64,000 bases of DNA from Mobula birostris (GCF_030028105.1 NC_092379.1:23925821-23989820), one strand, 5' to 3'. Shown: positions 2,733-43,373, counted from the stretch's first letter. Made by a program: numbers and translations. Notes: generated by a model from the letters alone, not told the origin.

Positions 2733-2796
2733 AGTTTTTGTCCAGCTCCCAATCATCCTGGTGCATAATACGGTGCTTCACTGCAGGTCATAATAC
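2733..2796 (-). pseudogene. Degenerate D site, cassette 1
   Basis: Plus strand agtttttgt-12-catcctg-gtgcataa-tacggtg-12-tcataatac; homologous to the cassette 2 D, with both heptamers mutated. Confidence 0.65.
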
Positions 2797-3605
2797 GACT
2801 TCGTCATATCCAGCCCGAAATCTAGAGGATCGCCGAGCCCCCCAGCAGATTTTTTAAAACTACACTCAGTGTCTGGGCGTCCCACACAGCGGGTCTCAAT
2901 CTCAGCAATCCTAGTCCTGAAGTGGAGATGATATAATCAACCGACTGGGCTTCAGCTGACAGCTCCTCCTCTGTAGTTCCGTTCGCATTGAGACTCATTT
3001 CCAGTGGAAAATGTACCAATTCTCAGATTATGCACTTGTGATCTGATTTATATCCAGGTATGCCAGAGTAAAGCCGGCAGAAGCGAACGAAGAGTGTGAT
3101 TAGAACTGTTTTGTTGTAATAGATATGGAGGACAGCCACCTCTCACACTGTGGCACGCCAGGATATAGCCGATGTGATAAACCGATGTAGGATAACCCCC
3201 GCCCCTCTCACTCCCTCTCAGCACAGTCACTCCTCAGTCAAACCGCTCTAGAACACCAAAGTGTCTCGGATAATTAATGTTCCCTAGAGCCCGATCATTT
3301 ACTGTCACGTGTAGACGAAGCACCGACACCTGACAAGGTGGATCGGTGAGCCCATTCGCACTCACTGCGCTTGGCCTTGAGCTGCCGTCCAAAGTGATCC
3401 GCTGAACCTCTGCGCCCATCCATCCAGCATCCCTTTTGGGGAATCCACTCTGAAAACCCGCCTTCGATTGCGTGGACGAGTGGATGTAGTCCAGAACGAC
3501 CGAGATACGGCTGTGCCGAATACTGCTGCCATGTCCTTCAGCGCTCAAAGAGTAGGCGCTCTCGCTCAGTATTATTCCCGGTCTAGTGTCGGTGTCTTGA
3601 CTGTG

Positions 3606-4091
3606 TCTCTCGCACAGTAATAGGTGGCCGTGTCTTCCAGTCTCAGGTTGTTCATTTGCAGATAAACGGTGCTGCTGTCCTTGGAAACCTGGAATCTGTC
3701 TTCGACTCCAGGCGCGTACTTCTTGATACCTTTATCCCACACAACGGCCACCCATTCCAGCCCTTTCCCGGAGACCAGTTTCACTATGACAGGCCAAGTC
3801 ATAGCTGCTGAGGTGAACCCACTGACTGCACAGGTCAATCTGTGGGTCTGTCCAGTCTTTGCCACCGCTGACACAGACCGTGTCGGCAGGATATCGACTG
3901 ACGCCTGTCAATAAAAAAAGGAACAGAAATTGATAAAACGAACTCCGAGCATAGACACACAAAGCCTTGGAGAACCAGCCATCCAAGGGTAGGTGATAAA
4001 TTGCGGGACCGACACCTGCTAGGCAACGCAGGAGAGGACAGAGATAACGAATGACTGCTGTCCTGCAGAGCACTGAATGCGACTAGGACAT
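3606..4091 (-). pseudogene. IGHV: IgH-type V pseudogene (V1, subfamily I)
   Basis: Leader begins ATG TCC TAG (stop at codon 3, 4085-4083). There is a 2-nt deletion at the start of the V exon (3904), the FR2 Trp is lost, and the RSS is CACAGTC-23 with a degenerate nonamer. FR3/YYCARD is still recognisable. Confidence 0.92.
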
Positions 4092-4336
4092 TTTTCAGAT
4101 CGGGGTTCAGCTGAGCGCTGAGAGCGCTGTTCAAATCGAGACGTGGACCGCGAGACAGAGAAGGAGCTGCTGCTTGAACAGACTCCCAACTACGAAAACC
4201 AGAGGCAGAGTTTCCTGTCCTCGCCCCCAGCAGAGATTTGAATTTTCCAAACAGGTCAGCGGAAGTGAGAAGATCGGAATAGAAGATCTGTTACACTCAT
4301 CATTTTCGGCGATAAGCCGCTTGTTTAAACTGAAAG

Positions 4337-4605
4337 TAGGTTACATGGAAGTAAGTACAGAGGAGATGTCAAGGGTACGTTTTTTACGCAGAGTGGTCAG
4401 TGCGTGGATTGAGCTGCCAGCAGCGCCGGAGGAGGCGGAAACAATAGGGTCTTTCAAAACAGTTCTGGATAGGTACATCGAGCTTAGAAAACTAGAGGGC
4501 TATGGGTAAGCCTAGGTATTTCTAGGGTAAGGACATGTTCGGCACAGCTTTGTGGGCCGAGGGGCCTGTATTATGCTGTAGGTTTTCAATATTTCTATGT
4601 TTCTA
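4337..4605 (+). mobile_element. CR1-like LINE 3' end in the V1 upstream region; orthologous insertions at 22667-22928 and 43795-44054
   Basis: RT C-terminal remnant (FLRRVVSAWIELP) and (tttctatg)n tail; TGAAAG target-site duplication; empty site in V4 (aaactgaaaggctgag). Confidence 0.85.
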
Positions 4606-4631
4606 TGAAAGGCAGAGAACCCCGGCGAGAA

Positions 4632-9530: not shown

Positions 9531-12316
9531 TATCCAATTGTCGCTATACTAGGACTAATGTTGGCAAGCATGCGTAGGGTCACGAAATGATGACACGGGC
9601 AGCTGATATTTGAACGTGCTTCTCTTTACAGAGGGTCATTTAGAAGTTAGAATTGGGCCATCGACCATGAGGGTGCAGCCATAAGAGAAGCTAGAAATAT
9701 TACCTGCATGGGTGAGTGATACTGGAGTTGCCAGGAGTGGACAATAGATTTCACTTGTTGCCTGAAGTGGAGGGCTATAGATATCAATTGGATCCGCTTC
9801 CACAACGTATGCTGTTGTTCCAGGTACTTTCAGTCTTTGCATTTTTAATGTCTCATGTATTAACTTTGGTATTCTCTCTTTCATCTATGACAGTGATTAT
9901 CGTCCCTATCATTCTCTCTGATATTATGTATTTCACCAGGTCAGCTTTCCTGCAAAAGATCATGCAATCCTGGTTTGTCTAAACTCCCTCCCCCCCCGCC
10001 CCCGTATATCATACATGTCAATTCAGATAACATTGAAACATAAACATCGAAACATGGAAAACCCACAGCACAATACAGGCCCTTCGGCCCACAATGTTGT
10101 GCCATACTTTGGTGAAAGTGCATTGATGTGAGCCAGTAAATCTGTTTCTCAAACCACATATGTTCCCCGAGCTACCCAGAGTTGGCACTGCAGGAGGCAG
10201 AATAACGCCAGTCGATCAGAATTGCAGCCGAAGACATCATACATCCCGGGAACGACAGGCTGTATCTAAACTTTTGTCTGGATCAGTGTTCCTCGTGCAC
10301 TTTACAAAAATACCGATCAAATTGAGAACAGGGGGCTGCGCTGAATGGAGGAGCTGGAGGTGCGTGTGTCAGCTTCGAAGAAACTTGCAACCAAATAACA
10401 TCCGGGTATTTAAAAAAAAAAATAATGGAGGGTAAATCACCAGATCGGATGAGATTCTGTCTGATTTTCGCCTGCATTGTATGAATTTGATATAATTTAA
10501 CAGATGGGCAATTTTAGTTACTCATTTTTTGAGCTGTAGGCTGTGCCGGGAAAGTCAGAATGAATTACACATCTGGGTCGCTATTCAGAGAGCGTTTGGA
10601 GGCAATCACGTTGACGGGTGAGGGGTCATAAAGAGTCTCGGAGGCTAAGGATGAGCGATCTCTTTCCTGAAGGATATCACTAATTCTGAAAGGAAATTAT
10701 TACTAATGGCGAGATTTGAAAATAAATACAAATTGGAAATCTGACTGCAGATCAAAGTCTGTTGCGGATTATTATAACCTAAGTTTAAATTTGTCAGGTT
10801 TGTTCTGGTTGTATTCGTGAACTGTTCTTCCATCCCCCTGCACCACTCAGCTGATTTCATGTGCTGCCCTATTCTCCATCGCTTTGAATCTAACTGCCTG
10901 CCTGCCTGCCTGCTGGATCACTCTATAGATAGTGCCCAGGACAATGTTTTCCCATTGATAACATCACAAGAATATGCTGTCTGATCGTTATGACCTTAAC
11001 GTTAATGGAATCTGCTGTGTGCAGAATTTCTCCATATTCCCTTCACTGTAACAGGGCCGTATTTTGCAACTAGGTCTTTGCCCGTGATCTGCTCGGGGCA
11101 CAATGAAAGGTGCTCTGTAAATTTCAGGACGTTATCTCACAACATCTTTTACCGAATCACCAATATAACTGGTTTATGTGGAAAGTACTTGTTAAACAAA
11201 CCCAGTCACGATGTAAGACGGCAAAGAATTAGATCGGTTGCTCCGTCAGTGAACTGAGAATAAACAGTTTCTTTGAATAGCAAAGTTCAAATTATGTCCC
11301 GTGAGTATGTGATGGGATAGTTTAGGGGAAGTTTGCCCTCGGATCCTCAAGGATCTGGTGCTCTGCACAGGGTTACGAACCCTCACTGTTCAAAAAGTTG
11401 CTCTGGAAATAACAATAGAAAATCAAAATCTGTGTGCGACGGTATTCCGGATCCCGAAGTTTACACTCTAGTGCACCTGGCCTGGGAAGGATCAAAGCGT
11501 GCAGGTGGATCTTTCTTTGTCATCCGTAATTGCCAAGACAGGACATGGGACTTATAATCTGCACTTAATTCATGTTCTGTGTACTTTGGGATGCTCTATG
11601 GAATCTCATTGAGGAAGAATTCCCCAGAATAACAAGCTAAGTACTGATTCCATCGATAGACAGAACAGAGTGACGTCATTGATCAGATAATGTCTGGACG
11701 TAATGTCCGGGTTTATTGGCTGTGCAAATCCAATAAACCCATTGGCTCTCTGCTCTTCTCCGTATCCCTACAAATGGCAAATTCCCTCCTGTGCCAACTC
11801 TGCACTCACAATTGGACATCACGATGATTCAGGCAGTGTGTTCCAGATCACTAACGCTCATCAAAACGTTCCCCTAATTGGTTCCACCCACAACATCTAT
11901 ACTACTCCTAATTCAGATCCGTAAATGCAATGATGCCTGCAATTTATGAAGGCATTGTGCCTTCAATTCCCTGCCATTGTATTTCTACACCACTTATCCA
12001 TTGTCTCCCCAACTCCAAAGTTCTGCCTCTCCATACACCATCTGCTCACCCATCAGGGAATAACTCTAAAAGCTTAAAGCAATCAATTAATCCTGAGATG
12101 TCGCTTATACCTTAGGTGCATCCTGGGACAAACCTCACGCTGAACATTACATGATTGGTCTGACACACCACCTCTTACCTGGTGCCTTTGGAAGCAGTAT
12201 AATAGAGCTGAGCATGGGCCAGTATGTATAAGTATGACCAGGAAGGTGATTACTGTAACATGAACGTATGGAAGGACAAGCCACTGACCGGGGACGAAAG
12301 CAGAAAGAGCATAAAT

Positions 12317-12558
12317 CCAAGACCAACAAAGCTCCGTGACAGCTTCATTCACCAAGCCATCAGACTGCTTAATTCATGCTGAAGCAACTGTATTTCTATG
12401 TTATATTGATTATCATGTTGTACCTAACATTTATTATAAATGACTATAATTGCACATTGCACTTTTGAACGGAGACGTAACGTAAATATCTTTACTCATC
12501 ATGTATATGAAGGATGTAAGTAATAAGCTCAATTCAATTTAATCCAGTTCAATTCAAG
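12317..12558 (+). mobile_element. Rex1-like LINE 3' tail; orthologous copies at ~20367-20607, 34022-34262, 41370-41607
   Basis: KLRDSFIHQAIRLLN-like ORF end and (ttcaa)n tail; ~0.4 kb 3' of D in four cassettes. Confidence 0.65.
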
Positions 12559-12946
12559 TTACTGTCAGCGAGGTCCTTCCTAATAGGCGAGATATTCACA
12601 CTTCTCCTTCTCCCCATTCACCCAGTACAGTAACTTCACTTGCCCGTCTTATCCACTGATCTCAGAAAAGTGTCAACATGATCCCAGACCGGCAGCAACC
12701 ACTTCCTGGATTTCTAACCGAAATTTCTGCTTGGGTCCTCCCAGCCTCTGATTAAAAGAGTCATTTTCAGAGTTTTCCTGTGTGCAGACACGGGAATCAA
12801 AGTTGAAGCCAGTTGGGCTTTTCCTTTACCAGAAATAAACATTTGTCATTGCATTCTCTGTCAGCCTTCAGGCATTTGACTCTGGGAGGCTGCATTGCGG
12901 AATTCATGGAGACAGGCTCCGATGCAGACGCTCATTTGTCGAGATC

Positions 12947-13010
12947 AGTTTCTGTTCAGATTCCCATCACCGTGGTTGCTATCACGGTGCTTCACTGCAG
13001 GTCACAATCC
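12947..13010 (-). other. IGHD: D segment (ATAGCAAC, 12982-12975) with 12/12 RSSs, cassette 2
   Basis: Minus strand GGATTGTGA-12-CACCGTG-[ATAGCAAC]-CACGGTG-12-ACAGAAACT. Both spacers are exactly 12 nt, and the site lies at the same place ~0.8 kb 3' of V in every cassette. Confidence 0.8.
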
Positions 13011-13784
13011 GACTTCGTCATATCCAGCCCAAATCCAATGGATAGCAGAGCCAGCCAACGTATCTATTAAACCCTTCCTCTGGGTACGGGCGTCCCATAC
13101 AGCAGGTCTCAATCTCGGCCATCCCGGTCCTGGAGTGGATATGATATAACCCACAGGGACCTTACTCTGGACTTCAACTGACAGCTCCTCCTCTGTAGTT
13201 CCGTTCGCATTGAGTCTCATTTCTAGTTGAACTGGTACCCATTTCTTGATTATGCACTCCCTCTCCGATATATATCTATGATCAGGTAAAGACCGGCAGA
13301 ATCGAACGAACAGCCGAGTTAAAAGTGTTTTGTTGCAGTAGATATTGAGAGCTGCCACCTCTCACACTGAGGCACACCATGAAATAGCCGATATGATAAC
13401 CGACGTACGGTAACCTGCGACCCTATCACTATCTCTCAGCAGTTCACTTGTCAGTCAAATCGCGCCAGAACAGCAATGGTTCTCTTGTCACTAATGTTCT
13501 GCATACCCCGACTATTTATTGTAACATGTAGACGAATGACCGACATCTGACAAGTTGGCTCTTCGAACCTATTCACCCTCTCAGCGCTTGGCTCCGAGCT
13601 GCCGTCTGTAGTGATCCGCTGAGACCCTCGGCCCATTCATCCAGCATCTGTTCTCTGGAATCACCGCTGAGAACCCGCTTTCCATTGCGTGGACGAGCGG
13701 ATGTGGCCCTTAACGAGTGGGATAGAGCTGTGGCGATCACTACTGGCCTTTCCCTCTGCGCCCTACAGTTCGGCGATTTCACTG

Positions 13785-13823
13785 AGTTTTTGTCTCGGTC
13801 TACTCCCAATATCTCTCACTGTG
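13785..13823 (-). other. 23-RSS of V2
   Basis: Minus strand CACAGTG + 23 nt (agagatattgggagtagaccgag) + ACAAAAACT. Confidence 0.95.
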
Positions 13824-14308
13824 TCTCTCGCACAGTAATAGGTGGCTGTGTCGTCCAGTATCAGGTTGTTTATTTCCAGATAAACTGTGCTGCTGTCCTT
13901 GGAAACCTCGAATCTGCCTTCGACTCCAGGAGCGTATTTTTTGTTACCGTTAGCCCATACAGCGGCCACCCATTCCGGCCCTTTCCCTGCGACCTGCTTC
14001 ACCCAGTACATGCCATAGCTGCTGAGGCTGAACCCACTGACTGCACAGGTTAATCTGTGGGACTGTCCGGGTTTTACCATCTCTGACTCGGGCTGTTCTA
14101 GCCTGATACCGGACTGCGCGCCTGTCAACAAAAGAAGAGAAACAATTGATAAAAATTTTCCACGAGCATAGATTGACAAAGCCTCTGAGAAACAGTCTGC
14201 CTCGGGTAGATAATAAATTGTGGGGCAGGCACCTGGAAGGCAAAGCAGGAGGAGACAGTAATAAGGAATGCCCCATATCTTGCTGAGCACTGAATCCGAC
14301 TTCGACAT
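13824..14308 (-). CDS. IGHV: Intact IgH-type V gene segment (V2, subfamily II): leader exon 14308-14233, 111-nt GT-AG intron 14232-14122, V exon 14121-13824
   Basis: Spliced product [124 protein letters not shown]. It has both Cys, the FR2 Trp, the YYCAR end and a phase-1 intron, and is followed directly by an RSS. The [14 protein letters not shown] style resembles chondrichthyan IgW V as I recall it (inference). Confidence 0.95.
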
Positions 14309-20300: not shown

Positions 20301-21007
20301 AAAGATGTTGGCTGCAACATGAAGGCCAAGCAAATGACCGGGGACAAATGGAAAAACTGCATAAAAGCCAGGACAAACAGGCTACGATATATCTTCTTCC
20401 ACTCGGTCACCAAACTGCTTAATTCATGGTGACGCAAATGTATTTCTATGTTATATTCACTATCCTGTTGAATATGATATTAATTATAAATTACTATAAT
20501 TGGGCATTGCACATTACAACGGAGACGTAACATAAACATTCATTCCTTATGTATATGAAAGATGTAAGTAGTAAAGTCAATTCATTTCAATTCAGTTCAA
20601 TTCAAGATACCGTCAGCCTGGTCCCAGCTAGTCGGCAAGATATTCACACTGCTCCGTCTCCCCGTTCACCGAGTACATCAACTTCACTTGTCCGCCGCAT
20701 CCACCAATCTCAGAAAAGTGTCAACATGATCCCCGACCGGAAGCAGCTACTTCCTGGAATTTTACCTGAAATTCCCAGCCTGGTTCTTCCTGGCCTGCAA
20801 ATAAAAGAGGCACTTTCACAGTATTCCTATCTGCTGACACCGGTTCGCTCTTTTCCGCGGTATTAGGCTTGAAGCCATTTGGGCTTATACTTGACGAGAA
20901 ATTTTGCTTTAACAGTCTGAGTCAGCCTTCAGGGATTTGACTCTGGGAGGCAGCAATGCGGAATTCGTGGAGACAGACTGCTGTGCAGACTCCCATTTGT
21001 CGGGACC

Positions 21008-21071
21008 AGTTTTTGTCCAGCTCCACATGACCCGTGTGCAAATCACGTTACTTTACCGCAGGTCATAATAG
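21008..21071 (-). pseudogene. Degenerate D site, cassette 3
   Basis: Plus strand agtttttgt-12-gacccgt-gtgcaaat-cacgtta-12-tcataatag; heptamers decayed. Confidence 0.6.
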
Positions 21072-21842: not shown

Positions 21843-21881
21843 GGTTTTTGTCCCGGTCCAGTCCCCGTCTCTCTCACTGTG
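21843..21881 (-). other. Canonical 23-RSS of pseudogene V3
   Basis: Minus strand CACAGTG-23-ACAAAAACC. Confidence 0.95.
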
Positions 21882-22377
21882 TCTCTCGGACAGTAATAGG
21901 TGGCCGTCTCTTCCAGACTCAGGTTCTTCATTTGCAGATAAACGGTGCTGCTGTCCTTGTAAGCTTGGAATCTGCTTTCGACTCCAGGCGCATACTTCTT
22001 GTTACCTTTATCCCACACAACGGCCACCCATTCCAGCCCTTTCCCGGAGACCAGTTTCAGTATGACAGACCATGTCATAACTGCTGAGGCGAACCCAGTG
22101 ACTGCACAGGGCAATCTGTGGGTCTGTCCAGGCTTTTCCACCTCTGACGCGGGCTGTGTCAGCAACATATTGGACTACACGCCTGTCAATAAAAAAAAAA
22201 AAAACGGAGGAGATATTGATAATACGACCTACGTGCATAGACTGACAAAGCCCTGTAGAACCAACCGGCCATGGGTAGGTGAAAAATTGCAGGGCACACA
22301 CCTGCTAGGCAAAGCAGGAGAGGACAGAGATAAGGAATGTCTCCTATGCGGCTGAGCACTGAATGCGTGTTGGACAT
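21882..22377 (-). pseudogene. IGHV: IgH-type V pseudogene (V3, subfamily I)
   Basis: Leader MSNTHSVLSRIGDIPYLCPLLLCLA-G (22377-22302) is intact. V exon 22182-21882 has CAG>TAG at 22177-22175 and a CDR1/FR2 indel pair that removes the Trp; it ends YYCPRD. Confidence 0.92.
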
Positions 22378-28440: not shown

Positions 28441-29134
28441 CATACAAATGACCCATTTCTTTGCCATATCCAAAACCTCACCTCCTCCCTAAAATGACGA
28501 GAACTTCTCGCAATCCCCAAAATGCTGCGCCAAGAGCAATCCACCGTTCTTTTAGGTGCGGTGGTGGGGTTTCAGCTCAAGGCGAACAAAAAAAGAAGAC
28601 CCCCATATGAAGTGACACACTGGAGAATCACTTGCTCAGTTGGGAATGGCGCTGTGATGTTTTGGTGTCATATAAATCAATAAAAAAACAAGTTGGTTTC
28701 ATCAAAATAAATTCGTTAAAATAAAACTGGAAACAGTCCAGTTGCAACAAATCAGACTTACAGAATTTGGTGAAAGGGCATTGATATGAGCTAATGACTC
28801 TGTTTCTCAAACTACATATGTTCCCTGAGCTGCTCAGAGTTGGCACTGCAGGAGGCAGAATAACGCCAGTCGGGCAGAATTGCAGCCGAAGACATCATAC
28901 ATCCCGGCAACAACAGGCTTCAACTACACTTTTGTCTGCATAAGTATCCTCGTGCACTATACAAAACACCGATCAAATTGAGAGCAGGGGGCTGGGCTGA
29001 ATGGGGGAGCTGGAGGTGCCCTTGTCAGCTTCGAAGAAACTTGCAACGAAATAAAATTCGGGTATTTGTACAAAATAATCGCGGGTGAATCACCAGATCG
29101 GATGAGATTCTGTCTGGTTGTTCTCTGCATTGTA

Positions 29135-32100
29135 GCCAATAGACAATAGACATTAGGTGCAGGGGTAGGCGATTCGGTCCTTCTAGCCAGCACCGCAATT
29201 CACTGTGACTATGGCTGTTCAGCCACAATCAGTATCCAGTTCCTGCCTTATCCCTATAACCTTTGATTCCACTATCTTTAAGAGCTCTATACATCTCTTT
29301 TTTTGAAAGCATCCAGTGACTTGGCCTCCACAGCCTTCTGGGGCAGTGCATTCCGTATATCCACCACTCTCTGGGTGAAAAAAAGTTTTTCCTCACTGCG
29401 TTCTAAATGGCCTACACCTTATTCTTAATCTGTGGCCTCTGGTTCTGGACTCACCCATCAGCGGCTACATGCTTCCTGCCTCCAGCGTGTCCAAACCCTT
29501 AATAATTTTATATGTTTCAATAAGATCCCCTCTCAGCCTTCTAAATTCCAGAGCATACAAGCCCAGTCGCTCCAATCTTTCGACATATGACAGTCCCGCC
29601 ATCCCGGGAATTATCCTTGTGAACCTACGCTGCATTTCCTCAATAGCAAGAATGTCCTTCCTCTAATTTGGAGACCAAGACTGCACACAGTACTCCGGGT
29701 GTGGTCTCACCAGGGCCCTGTACAGCTGCAGAATGACCTCTTTGCTCTTATACTCAATTCCCCTTGTTATGAAGGCCATAATGCCATTAGCTTTCTTCAC
29801 TGCCTGCTGTACTTGCATTCTTACTTTCAGTGACTGATGTACAAGAACACCTAGATCGTGCTTCCCCTTTTCCTAACTTGACTCTATTTCGATAATAATC
29901 TGCCTTCCCGTTCTTACCACCAAAGTAGATAACCTCACACTTATCCACATTAAACTGCATCTGCCATGCATCTGCCCACTCACCCAGCCTGTCCAAGTCA
30001 CCCTGCATTCTCATAACATCCTCATCACATTTCACACTGCCACCTAGCTTTGTGTCATCAGCAAATTTGCTAATGTCACTTTTAATTTCCTCATCTAAAT
30101 CATGAATATATATTGCAAACAACTGTGGTCCCAGCACTGAACTCTGCGGTACCCCACTGGTCACAGCCTGCCATTTCGAACGGGACCCGTTAATCGCTAG
30201 TGTTTGTTTTCTGTCAGCCAGCCTATTTTAAATCCATGTCAGTACCCTGCCCCCAATACCATGTGCCCCAATTTTGCCCACTAATCTCCGATGTGGGACT
30301 TTATCAAAGGCTTTCTGAAAGTCCAGGTACACTACATCCACTGGCTTTCCCTTGTCCATTTTCATAGTCACATTCTCAAAAAATTCCAGAAGATTAGTCA
30401 AGCACGATATCCCCTTCGTAAATCTATGCTGACTCGGACCAATCCTGTTATCGCTATCCAGATGTATCGTAATTTCATCTTTTATAATTGACTCCAGCAT
30501 CTTTCGACGTCAGACGTCAGGCTAACTGGTCTATAATTCCCTGTTTTCTCTCTTCTTCCCTTCTTGAAGAGAGGGACAACATTAGCCACCCTCCAATCCA
30601 CAGGAACTGATCCTGAATCTATAGAATTTTGGAAAGTGATTACCAATGCGTCCACAATTTGTAAAGTCACCTCTTTAAGTACCCTGGGATGCAGACCATC
30701 AGATCCTGTGGATTTATCAGCCTTCAGGCCCAACAGCCTATCCAACACCATTTCCTGCCTAATATAAATTTCCTTCAATTCTTCCATTACTCGAGGTCCA
30801 TTGGCTGCTATTACATCTGGGAGATTGTTCGTGTCTTCCCTAGTGAAGACAGATCCAAAGTACCTGTTCAACTCGTCTGCCATTTCCTTGTTCCCCATAA
30901 TAAATTCACCCGCTTCTGTCTTCAAGGGGCCAATTTTGGTCTTAACTATTTTTTTTTTCCTTTTCACATACCTAAAGAAGCTTTTACTATCCTCCTTTAT
31001 ATTCGTGGCTAGTTTACTTTCGTACCTCATTTTTTCTCTGTGTATTGCCTTTTTAGTTATCTTCTATTGCTCTTTAAAAGTTTCCCAATCCTCTGGCTTC
31101 CCACTCGTCATTGTTATGTTATAGTTCTTCCCTTTTATTTGTATACTGTCCATTACTTCCCTTGTCAGCCACGGCCTACCCTTACTCCCCTTAGGATCTT
31201 TCATCCTCTTTGGAATGAAGTGATCCTACACCATCCGCATTATTCCCAGACACACATGCCATTGCTGTTCCACTGTCATCCCTGCTAGGGTATTGTTCCA
31301 TTGAACGTTGGCCAGCTCCTCCCTCATAGCACCATAGTTCCCTTTGTTCAACTGTAATACTGACAATTTCGAGTTTCTCTTCTCCCTCTCAAATTGTTGA
31401 TTAAAACTTACCATTTTATGGTCACTACCTCCTAATGGTTCCTTTACCTCGAGGTCCCTGATCAAATCCGGTTCTTTGCACAACAGTAAATCTAGAATTG
31501 CGTTCTCTCTGGTAGGCTCCAGTACAAGCTGTTCTAAGAATGTTTCTCGGAGGGACTCCACAAACTCCCTTTCTTGGGGTCCAGTACCAACCTGATTCCT
31601 CCAGCCTACCTGCATGTTGAAGTCCCCCATAACAACTGTAGCATTATCCTTGCGACATGCCAATTTTAACTCTTGATTCAACTTACACACTACATCCAGA
31701 CTACTGTTTGGTGGCCTGTAGATAACTCACATTAGGAACTTTCTACCCTTAGAATTTCTCATTTCTCTCCATACTGACTCTACGTCTCCTGATTCTATGT
31801 CCCCCCTCGCAAGGGACTGAATATCATTCCTCACCAACGGAGCCACCCCACCCGCTCTGCCCATCAGTCTGTCCTTTCGATAGGACGTATAACCTTGAAT
31901 ATTCACTTCGCAGGCCCTGTCCACTTGAAGCCATGTCTCTGTTATTCCCACAACATCATACTTACCAATTTCCAACTGTGCCTCAAGCTCATCCACTTTA
32001 TTTCTTGTACTCCGTGCATTCGTATACAATACTTTTAATTCATTACTCCCCTCACCTCCCATATCAATTCCTATTTCACTTGGCCATATTGTACGATCCG

Positions 32101-32190
32101 TTCTTGAGCTTTCTGCTCTGTTGATTCTGCTGTCATTCTCAACTTTTCTTATTCTCACTTTCCCTTTATCTCCATCCTTATGTTTCCAGT
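29135..32190 (-). mobile_element. Large CR1-like LINE (endonuclease + RT), frameshifted
   Basis: VLYTNARS, VVMGDFNM, GNYRPVSLTS, YLDFQKAFDKVPH, GVPQSSVLGP, FADDTKLGG; TTGTA flanks; absent from the paralogous site at ~10480. Confidence 0.95.
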
Positions 32191-34650
32191 TTGTATTAAT
32201 TTGATAGAACTTAATAGATGGGCAATTTTAGTTATTCAGCTTTTGAGCTGTGGGCGGTGCCAGGAACGTCAGAATTAATTACACATCTGGGTCGGCATTT
32301 AGAGAGCGTTTGGAGGCAATCACATTGATGGATCAGGAGTCATAAAGAGGTTCGGAGGATAAGGATGAGAGACCTCTTTCCTGAAGGATATCACTAATTC
32401 TGAAAGGAAATTATTACTAATGGCGATATTTGAAAATAAATACTTATTGGACATCTGACTGCAGATCCAAATCTGTTGCAGATTATTATGGCCTGAGTTT
32501 TAATTTGAAAGGTTTGTCCTGTTTGTATCCGTGAACTGTTATTCCATTCCCTTGCGCTACTCACCCGATTTCATGTGCTGCCCTATTCTTCATCGTTTTG
32601 AATCTAACCTTCTGCCTGCCCATTGAATCACTCTATATATGGTGCCCTGGAGAATATTTTCCCTTTGAAAACATCATAAGAATACGCTGTCTGATCGTTA
32701 TGACCTTAAGGTTTATGGATTCTGTGGTGTGCAGAATGGATCCATATTTCCTTCACTGTAACAGGGCCGTACTTTGCAACTACGACATTGCCCGTGAACT
32801 GCTCGGGACACAATGAAAGGTGCTCTGTAAGTGTCAGGACTGTACCTCACAGCCTCTTTGACCGAATCACCAGTAAAACTGGTTTATGTGGAAAATATTT
32901 GTTCAACAAACCCAGTCACGATCGAAGACGGCAAGAAATTGGAGCAGTTGCTCCGTCAGTGAACTGAGAGTAAACAGTTCCTTTTAACAGTAAATTTCAA
33001 ATTATGTCCCGTGAGCGTATGTGGGACACTTTAGGGGAAGTTTGCCCTCTGATCCTCAAGGATCTCTTGTTCTGCACAGGGCTACGAACCCTGACTGTTC
33101 AAACAATTGCTCTGGAAATAACAATAAAATTCAAAATCTGTGTGCGACGGTACTCCTGATCCTGAAGCTTACACTCTAATTCACCTGCCCTGGGAGGGAT
33201 CAGACCGTTCAGATGGATCTTTCTGTGTAATCCGTCGCTGCCAGGAGAGGACATGGTAGCTGTAATCTGCACTTAACTCATGCTCTGTGTACTCTGGGAT
33301 GCTTGTTGGAATCTCTTTGAGGAAGAATTCTCCAGATTAACAAGCTAAATGCTGATTCCATTGCACGACAGAGCAGAGAGTGGCGTAATTGATGAGATAA
33401 TGTCTGGGCTTATTGTCGGGTTTTATTGGTTGAGCTAACCCAATAAACCAATTGACTTTCTGCTCTTCCCTGCATCCCTACGAATGGCAAAGCTCCTTCT
33501 GTTAAACCTCTACACTCACTGTTGGAGATAACGATCATTCAGTCAGTGTTTCAGATCATTAACGTTCATCAAAAACGTTCACCTAATTGGTCCCTCCCCA
33601 CACCTTCTATAGTACGTCTAATCCCCATTCGCCAATGCAAGGATGCCTGCAATTTTTGCAGGCATTTTGCCTTCAATTCCTTGCCATAGTAGTTCTACAC
33701 CACTTACCAACAGCCATCCCAACTCCAAAGATCTGCCTCCTTACACAATCTCCTCTCCCATCAGGGGATAAATCTAAAAACTTAAAGCCATCAATTAATC
33801 CTGAGATGTTACCTATACCTTAGCTGCATCCTGGGACAGACCTCTCGCTGTACATTACATGATTGGTCTGACACCCACCTCTTACCTGGTGTTATGGGAA
33901 GCAGTATAATAGAACTGAGCATGGAGCAGCATGTAGAAGAAGGTCTAGCAAGGTGATGACGGTAACATGATGTAAGGAAGGACAAGCCATTGACAGGGGA
34001 CGAAAGCAGAAGGATCATAAAGCCAAGACCAACAAGCTCCGTGACAGCTTCTTTCACCAAGCCATCAGACCGCTTAATTCATGCTGACGCAACTGTATTT
34101 CTATGTTCTATTGACTATCATGTTGTACATAACGTTTACTATAAATGACTGTAATTCAACATTGCACATTTGAATGGAGACGTAACGTAAATGTTTTTAC
34201 TAATCATGTATATGAAGGATGTAAGTAATAATGTCAGTTCAATTTAATCCAGCTCAATTCATGTTACTGTCACCGAGGTCCTCCCTAATAGGCGAGATAT
34301 TCACACTTCTCCGTCTGCCCATTCACCCAGTACAGTAACTTCACTTGCCCGTCTCATCCACTGATCTCAGAGAAGTGTCACATGATGGCAGACCGGCAGC
34401 AACCACTTCCTGCATTTCTATCCGAAATTTAACCTTGGATCCTCCTGGCCTCTGAATGAAAGAGGCATTTTCACAGTTTCCCTGTGTGCAGGCACGAGAA
34501 TCAAAGGCGAAGCCAGTTGGGCGTTTTCTTGCCCAGAAATAAGCATTTGTCATTGCAGTCTCAGTTAGCCTTCGGGGATTTGACTCTGGGAGGCAGCAAT
34601 GCGGAATTCGTGGAGACAGACGACGATGCAGACGCTCATTTGTCGGGATC

Positions 34651-34711
34651 AGTTTCTGTTCAGCTCCCCATCACGGTGGATATCACGGTGATTCACTGCA
34701 GGTCACAATCT
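34651..34711 (-). other. IGHD: D segment (ATATC, 34683-34679) with 12/12 RSSs, cassette 4
   Basis: Minus strand AGATTGTGA-12-CACCGTG-[ATATC]-CACCGTG-12-ACAGAAACT; 3 nt shorter than the cassette 2 D. Confidence 0.75.
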
Positions 34712-35464
34712 GACTTCGTCATATCCAGCCCAAATCCAATGGATCTATTAAACACTCCATCTGGGTACGGGCGTCCCACACAGCAGGTCTCAATCTTGAC
34801 CATCCAGGTCCTGAAGTGGATATGAGAAAACCACCGGGACCTTACTCTGGACTTCAACTGACAGCTCCTCCTTTTTAGTTCCGTTTGCATTGAGACTCAT
34901 TTCTAATTGAACGTACCCATTTCTTGATTATGCACTCCGTCTCCGATATACATGTATGATCAGGGTAAAGACCGGCAGAATCCAACGAAGAACCTCGTGA
35001 AAAGTGTTTTGTTGCAGTAGATATTGAGAGCCGCCACCTCTCACACTGAGGCACAATTTGAAATAGCCGATATGATACACCCTTGTACGGTAACCGCCGA
35101 CCCTTTCACTATCTCCCAGCAGTTCACTCGTCAGTCCAATCGCGCCAGAGAAGCAATGTATCTCTTGTCATTAACGTTCTATATACCGTTAGCATTCATT
35201 GTAACATGTAGACGAAGCACCGACATCTGACAAGGTGGATTTGTGAACTCATTCCCACTCACGGCGCTTGGCTCCGAGCTGCCATCTGAGGTGCTCCGCT
35301 GAGACCCTCGGCCTATCCATTCAGCATCTCTTCGCTGGAATCACCGCTGAGAACGCGCTTTCCATTGCGCGGACGAGCGGATGTGGCCCTTAACGGGTGG
35401 GATACAGCTGCAGCGATCACTACTGACCTTTCCTTCTGCGCCCCACCGGTCGGTGATTTCATTG

Positions 35465-35503
35465 GGTTTTTGTCGGGGTCTACTCCAGATCTCTCTCACT
35501 GTG
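35465..35503 (-). other. Canonical 23-RSS of V4
   Basis: Minus strand CACAGTG-23-ACAAAAACC (perfect consensus). Confidence 0.97.
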
Positions 35504-35987
35504 TCTCTCGCACAGTAATAGGTCGCCGTGTCGTCCAGTATCAGGTTGTTTATTTGCAGATAAACGGTGCTGCTGTCCTTGGAAACCTCGAATCGGCCTT
35601 CGACTCCAGGCGCGTAGTCTTTGTTACCGTCATAATATGCAACGGCCACCCATTCCAGCCCTTTCCCTGATACCTGTTTCACCCAGTGCATGTTAGAGCT
35701 GCTGAGGCTGAACCCACTGACTGCACAGGTCAATCTGTGGGACTGCCCGGGCTTCACCATCGCTGACACAGGCTGTTGCAGCAGCATATCGGACTGCACG
35801 CCTGTCAACAAGAGAAGAGCAGAAATTGATACAAATGTTCCACGAGCAGAGATTCACAAAACCTGCGAGAAACAGTCTGCCTTTGTAGATAATAAATTGT
35901 GGGACAGACACCTGGAAGGCAGAGCAGAAGGAGACAGAAGTAAGTATTGCCCCTTATCTTGCTTAGCACTGAATCCGATTTCGACAT
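35504..35987 (-). CDS. IGHV: Intact IgH-type V gene segment (V4, subfamily II): leader 35987-35912, 110-nt intron, V exon 35801-35504
   Basis: [124 protein letters not shown]; open frame, GT/AG sites and all hallmark residues. Confidence 0.95.
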
Positions 35988-36019
35988 TTTTGAGATCAGC
36001 GGCTTTAGCTGAGACCGGT

Positions 36020-36240
36020 TTTATCGCGAGCTGCCGAGAGCGCTGTTCAAATAGAGACGTAGACTGCCAGTGAGAGGAGGAGCTGCGGTTGTAAAGTCTC
36101 CCACACAATGAAACCAGAGACATAGATTCCTGTCCCCGCCTCCAGCAGAAATTTCAATTGTCCAAAATATACTTGTCTCTGCACAGGAGGCAGGTCAGCG
36201 GCAGTGACCAGATTCGGATTAATGATCTGGCACACTCAGC
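36020..36240 (-). promoter_or_regulatory. Putative VH promoter (representative copy; homologues at ~4.1-4.3, 14.3-14.5, 22.4-22.6, 43.5-43.7 and 61.8-61.9 kb)
   Basis: Conserved in all copies: a TATA-like tatttgaa/tatttaaa ~60-65 nt upstream of the ATG, an ETS-like ACAGGAA next to a GC box (plus strand ttcctgtccccgcc), and caggtcagcgg. No ATGCAAAT/ATTTGCAT octamer seen. Confidence 0.5.
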
Positions 36241-39200
36241 ATTTTCGGCGATAAACAGTTTGTGTAAACTGAAAGGCTGAGGACCTCGGCGAGAACGAAT
36301 GAGAAACACATGTCAGTGGGCAGGTTTCCCCCTGAGACACAGGGCTGAGAGACACCAGCCTCTGGTCAAACATCACCTTGTGAGACAGGAAGTGTAAGAC
36401 ACCAGTCAGTGGACACAGAGTCCCCTGAAAGACAGAAAGTGTGAGATTCTAGCCAATGGTCTGGTGCCCCACCCCCACGCCCCAGATACAGCGACTAACA
36501 GTCTAGTCAGTGGACAGATAACCTCTGAGAGACAAAGACTGAGATACACCAGTTAGTGGACAGATATCGCTCTGAATGACAGGGACTGAGCACACTAGTC
36601 AATGGGCAGATTTCCTCCTTTGGGACACCGTTCGAGAGGCACTGGACTGCGCACGAAAATGTAATAAACAAAAAATTCATGGTGTATATTCGATTATCCA
36701 GTTGTCATAATAAGACCAATGTTGGCAAGCACGCGTAGGGTCACCGAAGGATGACATCGGCAGCTGATAATTGAATATGTTCATGTTTACTGAGGGTGAT
36801 TTAGATGTTAGAATTTGGGCCATTGACCATGACTGTATAGTCATATGTGAAGCCAAGATATTATTCTGCATGGCTGAGTTTTTCTGCAGTTTCTCGGAAT
36901 GGAGAATAGATTTCATCTGTTGCCCGAGATAGTTGGCTTTAATTACATGGAGAGTTTGAATAAGCTGGATTTTTATTCGCTGGAAAACTAAGTCTAACTT
37001 TGAAGAAGTTTATAAAATTGTGAGCAGTACAGATGCTGCCAGAGTCCGTTTCCCAGGGCACACTAGGTTACAAACAGAGGGCATAAGTTTACGCTGAGAG
37101 GGCCAGAAAGCAAATAATATCTTAGCGATGTTATCCAATCATGATGTTCTTTTTAGCAGCATATCCACCTATTCTCTGCATAATGTATTGTCTCTTAAAT
37201 TGTATCTTAGATGTTGCAATCGTATCCGCTGAAGTTGCAGGTACTTCCAGTCTTCGCATATTTTTTTTTTAATTTCTCGTGTATCATCCTTGGTATCCTC
37301 TCTATTATATTAAATAAATGTATTCGGCGATTTCACTGTTCCACCTTGGCATAGGGACACTGATTATCCTCCATGTCATGCTCTGATATTACGTACTTCA
37401 CCAGGTCCTCTACGGGCTTTAATGTTCAATATAATGCAATCCTAGTTAGTCTAAACTTACATATATACCACACAAGCCAATCCAGATAACATACAATTGA
37501 CTCACTTATACGCCATACCTAAAACATCACATCCTTCCTAAAATGTGACGACGAGGACTGCTCGCATTTCTAAAAATGCGGCCGAGCAAAAACTTTACAT
37601 AGCGACAATTTTATTTGCTAACATTTATACTCATTGACACGAACGATAACGGGATATATATTGTTGCCTCATTTAGCACACCCCTTCCAGAGGCGCAAAG
37701 CCTTGTAGGGTTTGGAGGCTTGCGTGTCTCAATGACCCTGAAGACCCTGTGCTCTGGCGCTTCGTAGGATCACTTATGCCGAACAGATCAGACTGTAGAG
37801 CCTACGCTATGCGATAGACCGGTCCCCTAGGTCCATGGGCTGGGTTTCAGCTCAGGGACAACAGCCATGACAAGTGAAAAAAGGATGAAGTGTTCCTCAT
37901 ATGAAGTAACACACTGAAGAATCACTTGGCTATGCAATCCGATTCCGAAACTCCTGCTGAAGTTCCAGGTGCTTTCAGCCTTCGCATTTTTAATAAATTT
38001 CTGGTTTATCCTCTTTCGTATCCTCTCTTTCATTTTAAATCAATGTTGTCGACGATTTCATGCTTCCACATTGGCATTAAAAATATTATGTATTTCACCA
38101 GCTCGGCTGACAGTCTTTCGTCCTCAAGATAATGCAATCCTATGTTATCTATAATCCCCTCATATATCACACATGTCGTTACAGAAAACATACATTTGAC
38201 CCACTTCTGTGTCACATCCAAAACCTCGCATCTTTCCGAAAATGTTCCGATGAGATCTGTTTGCAATACTCAAAATGTAGTCGAGCCAAAATTCTATATA
38301 GCTGCAATATTACTTGCAAATATTTATACTCGATGACACGAGCAAAAACGGGATTTATGTAGCAGGCTTCATTTAACACACTCCTCCTAGAGGCTTGGAG
38401 GCTTGCGTGCCTCAATGACCCCCAGGGGCCTTGTGCTGTGGCGCGTGGTTTGTTCACTCATACCATACAGATCAAATTGTAGAGGCTGCGCCAAGAGCGA
38501 TACACGGTTCCTCTAGGTCCACGGGCGGGGGTGTTGCTCCAGGCCAACAGCCCTGACAAGCGAAAACATAGACGAAAGTGAATCCCATATGAAGTGACAC
38601 AATGCGGAAGCAATTGCTGATTTTGGGAAGGCCCTGGGATATTTTGGGGTTGCAGAACTCAATGAAAAGCAAATTGGTTTAATCGGAATAAATTTAGTAA
38701 AATAAAAAAAAAAAGAACAGCGTAGTTGCCACGAATCAGTCGGACAGAATTTGGTGAAAGGTCATTGATGTGAAATAGTAACTCTGTTTATCCAACCACA
38801 TATGTTCCCTGAGTTGGGCAGTGTTGGCATTGCAGGAGGCAGAATAACGCCTGCCGGGTAGATTAGTAGCCGAAGATCTCATACATCCCAGGACCAACAG
38901 GTGGTGAGTACGTTTTGTCTGTATCTGTGTTCCTTCTGTACTTTACAAAAACACCGATCAAACTGATAGCAGAGAGCTGGGCTGAAGGGGGGAGTTGGAT
39001 CTGCATGTGTCAGCACAGAAGAAATGTGCAACGAAATAACGTTTGGGTATTTGTACAAAATAATCGAGGGTGAATCAACAGATCGTCTGAGTTTCGGTCT
39101 GATTGTTGTCTATATTTTATTAATTTGATAGAGCGGGTAACTTGATCAACAGGTGGGCAATTTTAGTTATTCATCATCTGGACTCTGGTCTTCACTGAAG

Positions 39201-42010
39201 AAGTAAGAAATGAATTATTCTGGCTCGCCAGAGAGCCTTTTGATGCAAACAAATTGATAAGCCAGGAGTCATAAAGAAGCTCGTAGGGTAAAGATGAGAG
39301 ATCTCTTTCCTCGATGATATCAAAATTCTGAAACGAAATCCTTACTATTGGCGAGACTTAAAAAATACAAATTGCTAAGATGTTGGAAATCTGACCGCTG
39401 ATCCAAATCTGAGCGGATCATTTTGATCTGATTATAAATTTGACAGACTTGTTGTGGTGGTATTCGTGGACTGCTCTTCCATCCCCTGCGCTACTAATCT
39501 GATTTCATTTGCTGCCCTATTCTCCACCGTCCGAAATCGAACCTTCTGCTTCCCCATTGGATCACTGTATAGATCGTGTCCTGGAGAATCTTCTTCTTTC
39601 GGAAACATCACAAGAATAGGCTGTTGTTTTACTATCACCTTAAAGTTTTTTTGATTCTGTTGTGTGCTGAATAGTTCCACATTCTCTGCTCTGGAACAGG
39701 GCTGTATTTTGCAGTTCCGTCATTGCCCTTGAAAAGCTCTAACACAATGTAAGTTATTCTGTAAATGTCAAGACTGTACCACACAACTACTCTTACCGAA
39801 GCACTGGTATAAATGGTTTCACGCTATAGGAAAGGTTTCATTACTGATGTAATGTTTTTTTTGCAGCAACAGTGTGTTTGGTTTATGACTAGAGATCAAC
39901 GGGGCTTTGTAATGTGCGGTGTCCGATGAGGGGATTGGTGTTCGTTCTTGTGTGCCCGAGAGCGAGGGATTCGGGTGCTTTTGTTCGGGAGAAGATGCCA
40001 GAAAGGTGAAGTCGTAGACTGCAAGACGGAGCGGACCTGGAGTGTGGTTGGGAGTCGACGACACCCCGGTGAAATCGATGGAGAACGAACAGACGGGAAA
40101 ACAGTGAGCTCCATCGTGCACATTAGACTGCTTTATTAAAATGGACCCCTTTTCTTTTTATTTTGTTTACTCACCCTAGAGTCGAAGTAAGAGGTATAAA
40201 GCTCAATCGTTTAATTGCGAACTGTGTAATGTTTGTTATTTCGATGTACTAATTTGTAATAGGTGAACACATCACGCAGCATCCACACAAACAAGATTTC
40301 TCAAGTTGTCCAGGCCGGAGGCTGTCGACCCCTAGACTAACGCCACTGGTCGAACCTGAGTGTTACACCGGTTTACGTGGATCTCAACTGTTAAAGGAAC
40401 CCATTCAGGATGTAGGACGGCTTGGAATTATAGAGGCGGCTTTGTCTGTGAACTGAGAGCGAACAGTTCTTTTCAACAGCAAAGTTCAATTCATGTCCCG
40501 TAAGTGTATGATGGGACAAGTTAGGGGAAATTTCACTCTTTGTTTACGCACTAATGTCCCTGCCCTGGCTGGGATGGATAATGTAGAAGTATCTTTGTAA
40601 CTACTCTGTTCACTCTGGGGTGCTTAATGGAATCTCCACGAGGAAGAATTACCTAGATACACAGGATAAATACTGATTGTTTTCAATGAGGGAGCAGAGA
40701 GTGAGGACATTCATCCGATAGTGCCTGAGCAACCTTTTAGCTGATGAACCCAAATAAAACAATTGATCTCTCTGCTCTGTTCCGTCTCATTACGAAAATT
40801 AGATCTCCGCCTGTTCTCTCTCTACACTCACTATTAGACATCACGGTCTAATAGGCAATGTGTTTCAGGTCACAATCGTTCATCGATAAACGTCCCTTAA
40901 ATGGAACACTATTACACAATAATGACTTGAAAACCACACTCCCAACGCCACCTACACTATTCCCAAACCCTATCCGCCAATGCAAGGATGCCTGGAATTT
41001 ATGACGGCCTTATGCCTTCATTTCCCTGACTTAATATTTCTATACAACTTACCTACTACCTTCCCAACTCCAAAATTTATCCTCCCCATACACCATCTGA
41101 ACAGCCATCAGGGAATAAAACTAAAATCTTAAATCCATCAATTAATCCTCAGATATCGCCTGTACCATAGATACATCCTTGTACAGACCTGACGCTGATC
41201 ATTACATGATGGAGCTGACACCCACCTGTACCTTGGGGATATGGGAGACAATATAATAGTGATGACTATCGGCCAGCATTGACAAGGAAGTACAAGAAGA
41301 TGTTGGCTGTAACATGAATGTAAGGAAGACCAAGCCATTGACTGGGGACAAAGGGAAACAGTGCATAAAAGATAGTACAAACAAGCTACGGGACAACTTC
41401 TTCCAACAGGTCACAGAACTGCTTAATTCATGCTGACACAAATGTATTTGTATGTTATATTGACTATCCTATTGTATATAATAATGATTATAAATTACTA
41501 TAATTGCACATTGCACATTCAGCGCAGACGAAACATAAACATTTACTTCTCATGTATATTAAGGATGTAAGTAGTAAAGTCAATTCATTTCAATTCAGAT
41601 CAATTCAAGATATCGTCAGCGTGGTCCGTCCTAGTAGGCAAGATATCCACACTGCACCGTCTCCCCATTCACCCAATACAGTAACTTCAGTTGTTTGCCA
41701 CATCCACTAATCTTGGAAAAGAGTTAACATAATCCCAGTCCGGAAGAAGCTGCTTCCTGGATTTTTATCTGAAATCCCTAGCCTGGTTCTTCCTAGCCTG
41801 TGAATAAAAGAGGCATTTTCACAGTTTTCCTCTCTGCCGACACCGGTTTCCTCCATTTCGTACAATTAGAGTTGAAGGTATTTGGGCTTATACTTGCCCA
41901 GAACAGTTGCCTTAACAGTCTGAGTCAGCCTTCAGGGAATTAACTCTTGGATGCAGCATTGCAGAATTCGTGGAGGCAAACTGCAGTGCACACGTCCATT
42001 TGTCGGGAGC

Positions 42011-42074
42011 AGTTTTTGGCCAGCTCCCCATCACACTGGTGCATATCACGGTGCATAACTGCAGGTCATAGTAC
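42011..42074 (-). pseudogene. D site with defective 3' heptamer, cassette 5
   Basis: Plus strand agtttttgg-12-cacactg-gtgcatat-cacggtg-12-tcatagtac; the 3' heptamer reads CAGTGTG on the minus strand (no CAC). Confidence 0.65.
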
Positions 42075-42880
42075 AACTTCATCATATCTACCCCGAAATC
42101 GAGAGGGTCGCTGAGACGCCCAACAGATTTATTAAACCCACTCTCAGGGTTTGGGCGTCCCACACAGCGGGTCTTAATTTCAGCTAACCCAGTCCTGAAA
42201 TGGAGATGATGTAACCAACCGGCACCTTTCTCTGGGATTCAGCTGACAGTTCCTTCTCTGCAGTTCCTTTTGCATTGATACTCATTTCTAGTGGAGCATC
42301 TACCCATCCCTAGATTATGCACACGTGATCTGATTTATATCCATCGATGCCAGGGTCAAGACCGGTAGAAGCGAACGGGGAGCGTAATCAGAAATGTTTT
42401 GTTGTAATAGATATGGAGGACAGCCACCTCTCACACTGAGGCACACCAGCATATAGCCGATGTGATACACCGACGCACGATAACCTCCGCCCGTATCACT
42501 GCCTCCCAGCACGGGCACTCCTCATTCAAAACGCACTAGAACACCAAATGGTCTCTGATGATTAATGTTTCTCATAGCCCGACCATTTACTGTCACGAGT
42601 CGACGAAGGACCTATACCTGACAAAGTGAGCCCATTCCCACTCACGGCACTTGGCTTCCAGCTGACTTTCGAAGTGATCCGCCGAGCTCCTCGGCCCACC
42701 ATTCAGCATCTCTTCAGGACATCCACGCTGGAAACCCTCCTTCCATTGCGTGGACTAGGGGATGTAGCCCAGAACGACCGAGATACGGCTGTGGTGATCA
42801 CTACTGTCCTTTCCCTCAGCGCCCTAAGGGAAGGCGCTGTCGCTCGGTCTCACAGTCCACTCCCGATCTCTCTCAATATG

Positions 42881-43373
42881 TCTTTGGCACAGTAATAGGT
42901 GGCTGTGTCTTCCAGTCGAAGGTTGTTCATTTGCAGATAAACAGTGCTACAGTCCTTGAAAACCTCGAATCTGCCTTCGACTCCAGGCGCGTACTTCTTG
43001 TTACCGTTATCCCATACAACGGCCACCCATTCCAGCCCTCTCCCGAAGACGAGTTTCACTTTGACAGACCATGTCATAGACGCTGAGGCTGAACCCACTG
43101 ACTACACGGATCAATCTGTGGGACTGGACAAGTTTTGCCACCGCTGACAGGGGCTGTGTCAGCAGGATATCGGACTGCACGCCTGTCAATTAAAAAAAAA
43201 AGAGCAGAATTTGATAAAACTATCTCCGAGCGCAGACTCACAAAGCCTTTGAGAACCAGCCGACCATGGGTAGCTGCTTAAATTGCGGGACAGACACCTG
43301 CTAGACAAAGCAGGAGGGAGCAGAGATAAGGAATGGCCCCTATCGTGCTGAGCACTGAATCTGACTTGGACAT
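42881..43373 (-). pseudogene. IGHV: IgH-type V pseudogene (V5, subfamily I)
   Basis: Leader [26 protein letters not shown] (43373-43298), V exon 43182-42881. First Cys is mutated to Arg (CGT), there is a +4 frameshift at the CDR1/FR2 boundary, the heptamer has decayed to CATATTG and the nonamer is lost. Confidence 0.92.

Follow-up and report, generated by a model that had tools for sequence, protein, structure and literature searches.

The stretch of Mobula birostris DNA analyzed here (GCF_030028105.1, NC_092379.1:23925821-23989820; 64,000 nucleotides, referred to below as the window) contains a tandem array of variable genes of the immunoglobulin heavy chain (IgH) type, each trailed by the remains of diversity (D) and, in units 2-5, joining (J) segments. 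A six-frame motif scan, self-comparison and alignments over the whole window identified exactly five VH units, every one of them on the minus strand, so that downstream means towards position 1. Within each unit the order is leader-V, a dead D1-like relic, D and then a dead J, of which a relic is found in units 2-5. Because the D1-like relic, the D and the dead J are retained and constant (C) exons are absent, each cassette appears to be a truncated chondrichthyan V-D-D-J cluster without C, and is not a bare V-D pair.

The five VH units and their tandem arrangement

The leader ATGs of V1, V2, V3, V4 and V5 are located at 4091, 14308, 22377, 35987 and 43373, respectively, and each unit consists of a 76-nt leader exon counted from the ATG, a short intron and a V exon of ~298 nt that ends in YYCA(R/K)D. 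Steps of ~375-410 bp separate the V, D1-like relic, D and pseudo-J, and the D element lies ~780 bp downstream of each V; the segments of nurse shark IgH miniloci are also ~400 bp apart, with C located 6-7 kb further on (PMC2435157). The V genes and their recombination signal sequences (RSS; 12-RSS and 23-RSS according to spacer length) are listed below, with FR2 denoting framework region 2.

3605..4091, minus strand: V1, unit 1, type B pseudogene; stop at leader codon 3, 2-bp deletion at the start of the V exon, -1/+4 indel in FR2
V1 23-RSS, minus strand: decayed (CACAGTC, poor nonamer)
13824..14308, minus strand: V2, unit 2, type A, intact; leader from the ATG at 14308, V exon 14121-13824, open through YYCARD
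13785..13823, minus strand: V2 23-RSS; CACAGTG, 23-bp spacer, ACAAAAACT (scores 7/7, 23, 8/9)
21882..22377, minus strand: V3, unit 3, type B pseudogene; leader open, TAG two codons ahead of the mature N terminus, -1/+4 indel in FR2
21843..21881, minus strand: V3 23-RSS, perfect though the V is dead; CACAGTG-23-ACAAAAACC
35504..35987, minus strand: V4, unit 4, type A, intact; leader exon 35987-35912, V exon 35801-35504, open through YYCARD
35465..35503, minus strand: V4 23-RSS, perfect
42880..43373, minus strand: V5, unit 5, type B pseudogene; 4-bp insertion in FR2, uncompensated and resulting in a frameshift
V5 RSS, minus strand: decayed (CATATTG, nonamer lost)

Only V2 and V4 are intact: leader and V exon are open, the splice sites good and the 23-RSS canonical. 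V3 likewise has a canonical 23-RSS, and those of V1 and V5 have decayed. The exons of V2 and V4 match the Pfam V-set, and the closest database relatives of V4 are IgH V genes (VH3-like) of fishes and tetrapods, among them a catshark protein with 59% identity. Assignment of these V genes to IgW or IgM was not possible, as the protein search gave this one catshark V and no other ray or shark heavy chains. The 4-bp FR2 insertion is common to V1, V3 and V5, and is compensated by a 1-bp deletion in V1 and V3. In those two genes the -1 and +4 changes are 40 nt apart (3800-3760 in V1, 22080-22040 in V3) and the frame is restored; the altered stretch from complementarity-determining region (CDR) 1 into FR2 reads ..MTW(P/S)VI(V/L).. 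and lacks the usual W-V-x-Q. A conserved promoter motif, ATTTGAACAGCGCTCTC, is found on the minus strand ~50 bp 5' of the leader ATG in V4 (36052-36036), V2 (14372-14356) and V1 (4136-4120). The canonical promoter octamer, ATGCAAAT/ATTTGCAT, does not occur within the window.

Two cassette types, A (V2 and V4) and B (V1, V3 and V5), alternate along the DNA in the order B-A-B-A-B from V5 to V1, at distances of 7-14 kb from one cassette to the next. Self-comparison detected a homology block of 16132-22391 with 37136-43387 (82% identity) and another of 10477-14539 with 32191-36220 (86% identity), and both result from the tandem duplication of a ~21-kb unit comprising two cassettes. Elements of the long interspersed nuclear element (LINE) type, with endonuclease and reverse transcriptase open reading frames, are located at 27900-32300 on the minus strand and at 57600-59800 on the plus strand; the first of these accounts for the 13.6-kb spacer between cassettes 4 and 3 and for the strong local GC skew. 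Of the larger open reading frames between the cassettes, some encode LINE endonuclease or reverse transcriptase and the others match nothing. Positions 61609-63040 exhibit a weak similarity (67-68%) to the cassette promoter and leader region and the spacer upstream of it, with no recognisable V exon. Judged from this similarity, the segment may be a sixth cassette, heavily degraded and broken by the LINE at 57.6-59.8 kb.

The D and J segments of the cassettes and the absence of C

A D segment flanked by a usable 12-RSS on both sides (12/12 D) is found in units 2 and 4 only, the heptamers having decayed in units 1, 3 and 5.

12947..13010, minus strand: unit 2 D, 12/12 RSS; GGATTGTGA-12-CACCGTG, coding ATAGCAAC (12982-12975), CACGGTG-12-ACAGAAACT
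34651..34711, minus strand: unit 4 D, 12/12 RSS; AGATTGTGA-12-CACCGTG, coding ATATC (34683-34679), CACCGTG-12-ACAGAAACT
2733..2800, minus strand: unit 1 D relic; heptamers decayed (CACCGTA ... CAGGATG), nonamer ACAAAAACT retained
35010..35090, minus strand: D1-like relic of unit 4; other cores at 3156, 13375, 21438 and 42444

When the whole window was scanned for short segments lying between two RSS, the D of unit 2 (D2), that of unit 4 (D4) and one spurious pair were returned. The RSS of these two D segments are identical at 30 of 32 motif positions, which is not significantly better kept than neutral DNA. The 12/12 D is a real, RAG-used type of D, as related loci show. In contigs that are 90-95% identical to unit 4, assembled from sequencing runs presumed by guess to be RNA (here called RNA-like), the V coding end is connected via 8-13 non-templated letters to the first base of the D 3' heptamer (34678), and the sequence continues across the 3' 12-RSS. 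At this degree of sequence divergence, the contigs must derive from paralogues or from related species. A long J exon situated just past the D 3' RSS was considered and rejected, since the joined contigs retain the heptamer-12-nonamer and are VD-joined forms of paralogues. Partial VD-J rearrangements and their transcripts have been described in the nurse shark (PMC2435157). The related-locus contigs resemble partially rearranged or germline-joined shark IgH genes in that V is joined to the 12/12 D with the 3' RSS retained, whereas the cassettes of this window are unjoined, in the split germline form.

Midway from V to D, all five units carry a further relic composed of a nonamer-like GGTnTATCA, ~22-24 bp and C(T/A)CAGTG. 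A 15-bp core, CAGTGTGAGAGGTGG, is identical in all five copies (35048-35034 in unit 4; ~3150, 13369, 21432 and 42438 in the others). It is the longest run identical in all five aligned cassettes and exceeds any invariant run in the V exons, and the chance expectation for an invariant run of 15 bp is ~0.03 in the aligned 2 kb; the core may be a conserved regulatory or RAG-related element. From its position between V and D, the relic would be the dead D1 of a V-D1-D2-J cluster, and this is what we take it to be. The D1 of the chondrichthyan IgH cluster has spacers of the 12/23 type. The relic was also evaluated as a usable D or as a signal joint, and both were rejected: CTCAGTG is present in four of the five units, the best nonamer is 28-30 bp off, and there are no head-to-head heptamers.

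In units 2-5, a J relic (pseudo-J) is located ~375 bp downstream of D, with a relic 23-RSS consisting of a nonamer like AGTTACTGT, a 23-bp spacer and the weakened heptamer (A/C)AGTGTG.

12549..12603, minus strand: unit 2 pseudo-J; heptamer relic AAGTGTG, TAT TAG for TAT TGG, relic nonamer and 23-bp spacer just upstream
20597..20651, minus strand: unit 3 pseudo-J; TAG and deletion as elsewhere, relic 23-RSS AGTTGATGT-23-CAGTGTG at 20683-20645
34254..34308, minus strand: unit 4 pseudo-J; TAG, deletion, no donor
41600..41686, minus strand: unit 5 pseudo-J; relic 23-RSS AGTTACTGT-23-CAGTGTG

The pseudo-J reads ...TA(T/C) TAG G.. GGA CC. ..G.TG AC..TA.C. TGA ATTGA. The tryptophan codon TGG has become TAG, ~4 nt of the WGxGT core have been lost, and there is no GT donor. 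These lesions are identical in the A and B cassettes; the J therefore died before the A/B split and before the dimer duplication, so that its death predates the amplification of the array. Unit 1 has no pseudo-J because ~2 kb is missing there relative to unit 5. No intact J of the WGxGT type was found in the 64-kb window, and a WGQG at 30244 was rejected as a J, being out of frame within a LINE reverse transcriptase. Short contigs of 31-44 nt and high depth, present in all four RNA-like runs, fall on the unit 2 pseudo-J flank and its relic RSS (12491-12526 and 12609-12648), and probably stem from the conserved J flank of expressed paralogous clusters or from a repeat. C exons were sought with three C1-set motifs (C..W..[YF]xC, [YF]xCx[VA]xH and a B-strand motif) in a motif scan rather than a profile search; across six frames and 64 kb, no C1-set signature was detected outside the V exons, although heavily degraded relics could escape such scans.

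An earlier, sequence-only reading of this DNA had described five leader-V-23-RSS units with a single 12/12 D each, no J and no CH exon, and had seen in them a (VH-D)n design that departs from the chondrichthyan cluster plan. The five leader-V units are there, together with the absence of CH exons by the six-frame motif scans of 64 kb. Good 23-RSS are confined to V2, V3 and V4 and usable 12/12 D segments to units 2 and 4; the statement on J holds for an intact WGxGT J and has to be amended for units 2-5, which carry a dead J with its relic 23-RSS. The single D per unit has to be amended for the D1-like relic that all five have between V and D. The departure from the cluster plan is not supported, as the cassettes keep what we take to be a V-D-D-J skeleton that lacks C. 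The likeness to the chondrichthyan IgH minilocus (VH-D1-D2-JH-C) extends to segment order, ~400-bp spacing, orientation, the 23-RSS of V and the relic 23-RSS of J (PMC2435157; PMC5192425). The array differs from such miniloci in that C is absent, J and the putative D1 are dead, and the cassettes are 7-14 kb apart instead of >100 kb; unlike a minilocus, no cassette here can yield a heavy chain by joining its own segments.

Selection on V2 and V4 and transcription of V2

All differences between V2 and V4 arose after the dimer duplication, and hence after the death of J. In the frameworks, the ratio of replacement to silent substitution (dN/dS) between V2 and V4 is 0.25, from 13.5 silent changes in 55 sites versus 13.5 replacements in 190 sites (Fisher p 0.0006-0.001); the CDRs contain 10 replacements and no silent change. 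The same analysis of pairs of dead type B V genes gave dN/dS values of 0.6-1.95, none of them significant. Outside the coding sequence, the 230 bp 5' of the ATG are 92.5% identical between V2 and V4, compared to 86-88% for introns and intergenic DNA, and in the V RSS the heptamer and nonamer are identical at 15 of 16 positions and the spacer at 17 of 23. The V2 and V4 frameworks are thus under purifying selection, and both genes have retained leader, splice sites, open frame, promoter and canonical 23-RSS at a time when the type B V genes were already dead.

Among the RNA-like runs, run X1 holds 62% of the sampled V2-exon words. Its contigs with at least 97% likeness are identical to V2 from 13823 to ~14050; none lies on the V2 leader intron, on the 1.1 kb from V to the pseudo-J or in intergenic DNA. 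One of them, 108 nt long, departs from V2 at its coding end (13823) and extends 71 nt further; 30 nt of this extension past the junction have no match in the window, whether to D2, the pseudo-J or the T-cell receptor (TCR) type J segments described below (a 27-mer of this tail is absent from the window). Because the contigs are confined to the exon and one of them leaves it exactly at the V coding end, V2 is rearranged and transcribed, as judged from presumed RNA. V2-specific depth is ~10^-4 of the V-family depth in X1. A separate contig of 197 nt, from run X5 (organism B), matches the V2 leader and 5' untranslated region at 14232-14368 with 3 mismatches; at the leader donor it passes by splicing into another V exon (VQSDIVLKQ..). 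It documents for this V family that leader and V are spliced and that transcription begins 57 nt or more 5' of the ATG.

The state of the array could also be that of a dying IgH-cluster remnant without function today, in which chance alone has spared V2 and V4 and the V2 transcript stems from a rare joining event, aberrant or non-productive, that an RSS and promoter still in good condition permitted. Among the five V genes three are dead, as are all J and most D segments; C is gone and LINEs have inserted into the spacers; the low V2-specific depth, the failure to detect V4 and the lack of a canonical J motif in that part of the V2 junction which is seen would all fit such decay. Against decay alone stand a framework dN/dS of 0.25 (p ~0.001) where the dead copies of the same array have ~1, replacements concentrated in the CDRs, promoter and RSS motifs better kept than their neutral flanks, and the survival of V2 and V4 in intact form over two or more duplication rounds since the J died. 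Pure decay is weakened by these selection and expression data, and we regard it as unlikely.

A dense tandem array, most members of which have no usable RSS or no open frame, also calls to mind the chicken pseudo-V genes, and its copies could be templates that diversify rearranged V genes elsewhere by gene conversion. The leader, splice sites, conserved promoter flank and canonical RSS that V2 and V4 retain are not needed by a donor pseudo-V, and there is a transcript of V2 itself in which the junction lies at the V2 coding end. We know of no such route of diversification in cartilaginous fish, and a gene-conversion role for this array is scarcely credible.

TCR-type J segments and the partner of the intact V genes

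Since the cassettes have no usable J of their own and no C, yet their intact V genes are under selection and V2 is rearranged, a remote partner is needed. The window also contains two J segments of TCR type. These share the strand of the array and are located 8-9 kb upstream of V5, from which no C exon separates them.

51826..51906, minus strand: TCR-type J a; 12-RSS AATTTTTAC-12-TACTGTG, coding ...MIFGGGIRLTVLP, GT donor
51165..51241, minus strand: TCR-type J b; RSS with 11/12-bp spacer, GATTTTTGC-11-TAATGTG, coding ...KLTFGGGSQVTVLP, GT donor

The pair is intact-looking, with coding sequences ending in ...IFGGGIRLTVLP and ...LTFGGGSQVTVLP (FGGG..TVLP) and a phase-1 GT donor, and shows that TCR-type segments are interspersed in this region; the window-wide D scan found no TCR-type D beside the two J. 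As the pair lies upstream, the V genes of the array cannot use it by deletion, and it could by deletion serve only V genes located further upstream.

VH genes are found within TCR delta loci of frogs, coelacanth, birds and monotremes. In elasmobranchs, IgH is linked to TCR alpha/delta, rearrangements of VH to TCR delta D are common, and TAILV exist (PMC12227049, 2025); in the nurse shark, TCR delta uses IgH-like V genes, the TAILV (Deiss et al. 2019, as summarized in PMC12227049). The V genes described here are IgH-type by sequence, which is the mark of TAILV and VH-delta genes, and the latter are the closest known kind: in common are an IgH-type V with a 23-RSS, no usable J-C of its own and a TCR-type J nearby on the same strand. 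The array differs from them in that its V genes sit on the fossils of IgH miniloci, with D1-like relic, 12/12 D and dead J, and have been amplified as a two-cassette tandem. By the 12/23 rule, the V 23-RSS of V2, V3 and V4 fits the 5' 12-RSS of D-delta, and a V with such an RSS could equally be joined to a J that has a 12-RSS. Together, the TCR-type J pair on the same strand and the published IgH-TCR alpha/delta linkage and VH use (PMC12227049) favor a TCR partner.

We therefore propose, with a probability of roughly 0.55, that the intact V genes donate V regions to a distant D-J-C, that of TCR delta, in the manner of TAILV or VH-delta, being the most likely one. The origin of the array is seen in its sequence: an ancestral V-D1-D2-J-C cluster lost its C exons, and its J died by the change of TGG to TAG, the small deletion and the loss of the splice donor. 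The remnant then split into cassette types A and B, after which the ~21-kb two-cassette unit was duplicated in tandem. RAG would join the 23-RSS of V2 or V4 to a 12-RSS partner far downstream, most likely the D-delta of a TCR delta D-J-C, giving a VH-D-delta-J-delta-C-delta chain of the TAILV/VH-delta kind. The 12/12 D behind each V would be inherited baggage, of the D2 type of a V-D1-D2-J-C cluster, with a 3' 12-RSS unable to join TCR D or J signals. TCR delta as the partner of V2 and V4 is inferred from the genomic context and from the published systems.

Several observations weigh against this proposal. The 12/12 D of the intact cassettes suits an IgH J with a 23-RSS and not TCR segments, and three of the five cassettes are dead. 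The 30 nt past the V2 junction read ...EGSEQTVTSQ in frame, with no FGxG or WGxG and with an end that is slightly IgH-J-like (TVTS). No expression of V4 was detected in any run that was found (X1 holds 5% of V4 words), and the V2-identical contigs could derive from an identical copy elsewhere. Run X1 is also very rich in Ig V-family transcripts, so that B-cell usage is possible.

Some of these points bear on a different partner. V2 and V4 could join their own D, and the resulting VD, with its 3' 12-RSS, could join the 23-RSS JH of an IgW or IgM cluster elsewhere, in a semi-translocon or trans-cluster arrangement. A VD joint would expose a 12-RSS that TCR signals refuse, and the D is therefore either baggage or a pointer to an IgH-type J with a 23-RSS. 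The D of the intact cassettes has just this IgH-type 12/12 setup, V is joined to the 12/12 D in related loci, and run X1 comes from a sample rich in Ig; the 12/12 D and the TVTS-like ending of the V2 junction sequence keep antibody use alive. A precedent exists in the coelacanth IgW locus, in which VH-D units repeated in tandem are followed by many JH and C (PMC5192425). As in that locus, each VH here is closely trailed by its own D in tandem repeats. In the coelacanth, however, the VH-D pairs are a working design with a functional JH array and C-omega downstream of them, whereas here the pairing is probably left over from V-D-D-J clusters, two of the five D segments are usable, and the window contains no shared JH-C; because units 2-5 each have a dead J of their own, the resemblance is probably superficial. 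The V2 junction shows neither a trace of D2 nor WGxG, there is no functional JH or C within the window, and nurse shark IgH rearrangement is confined to a minilocus (PMC2435157; PMC5192425). On balance, antibody use of V2 and V4 through their own D is distinctly unlikely. The V2 and V4 cassettes could also be shared by two systems, being joined to TCR delta D in T cells and, via VD joints, to a distant IgW or IgM 23-RSS JH in B cells; such a double use is highly improbable.

The sequence-only reading had placed J-C outside the cassettes, in a semi-translocon locus or in a TCR. External J-C is supported by the dead J, the absent C, the selected V2 and V4 and the rearranged V2, and of the two destinations it is the TCR that the context favors. 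Its expectation of an unusual organization was not borne out, as the array belongs to a known kind.

As such, the array provides a case from a batoid whose DNA records the steps that turned an antibody minilocus into a proposed V donor: C was lost first, J died, and the remnant was then amplified, while in one of the two cassette types selection preserved nothing but the V, its promoter and its RSS. V2 and V4 are a testable pair for the use of orphan VH genes by T cells, B cells or both in rays, and the array is a small natural model for the change from a cluster-type locus to a multi-V locus. If the sharing of these cassettes by two systems were true, this would be a cartilaginous fish with a working proto-translocon, a missing intermediate between the cluster and translocon organizations of IgH.

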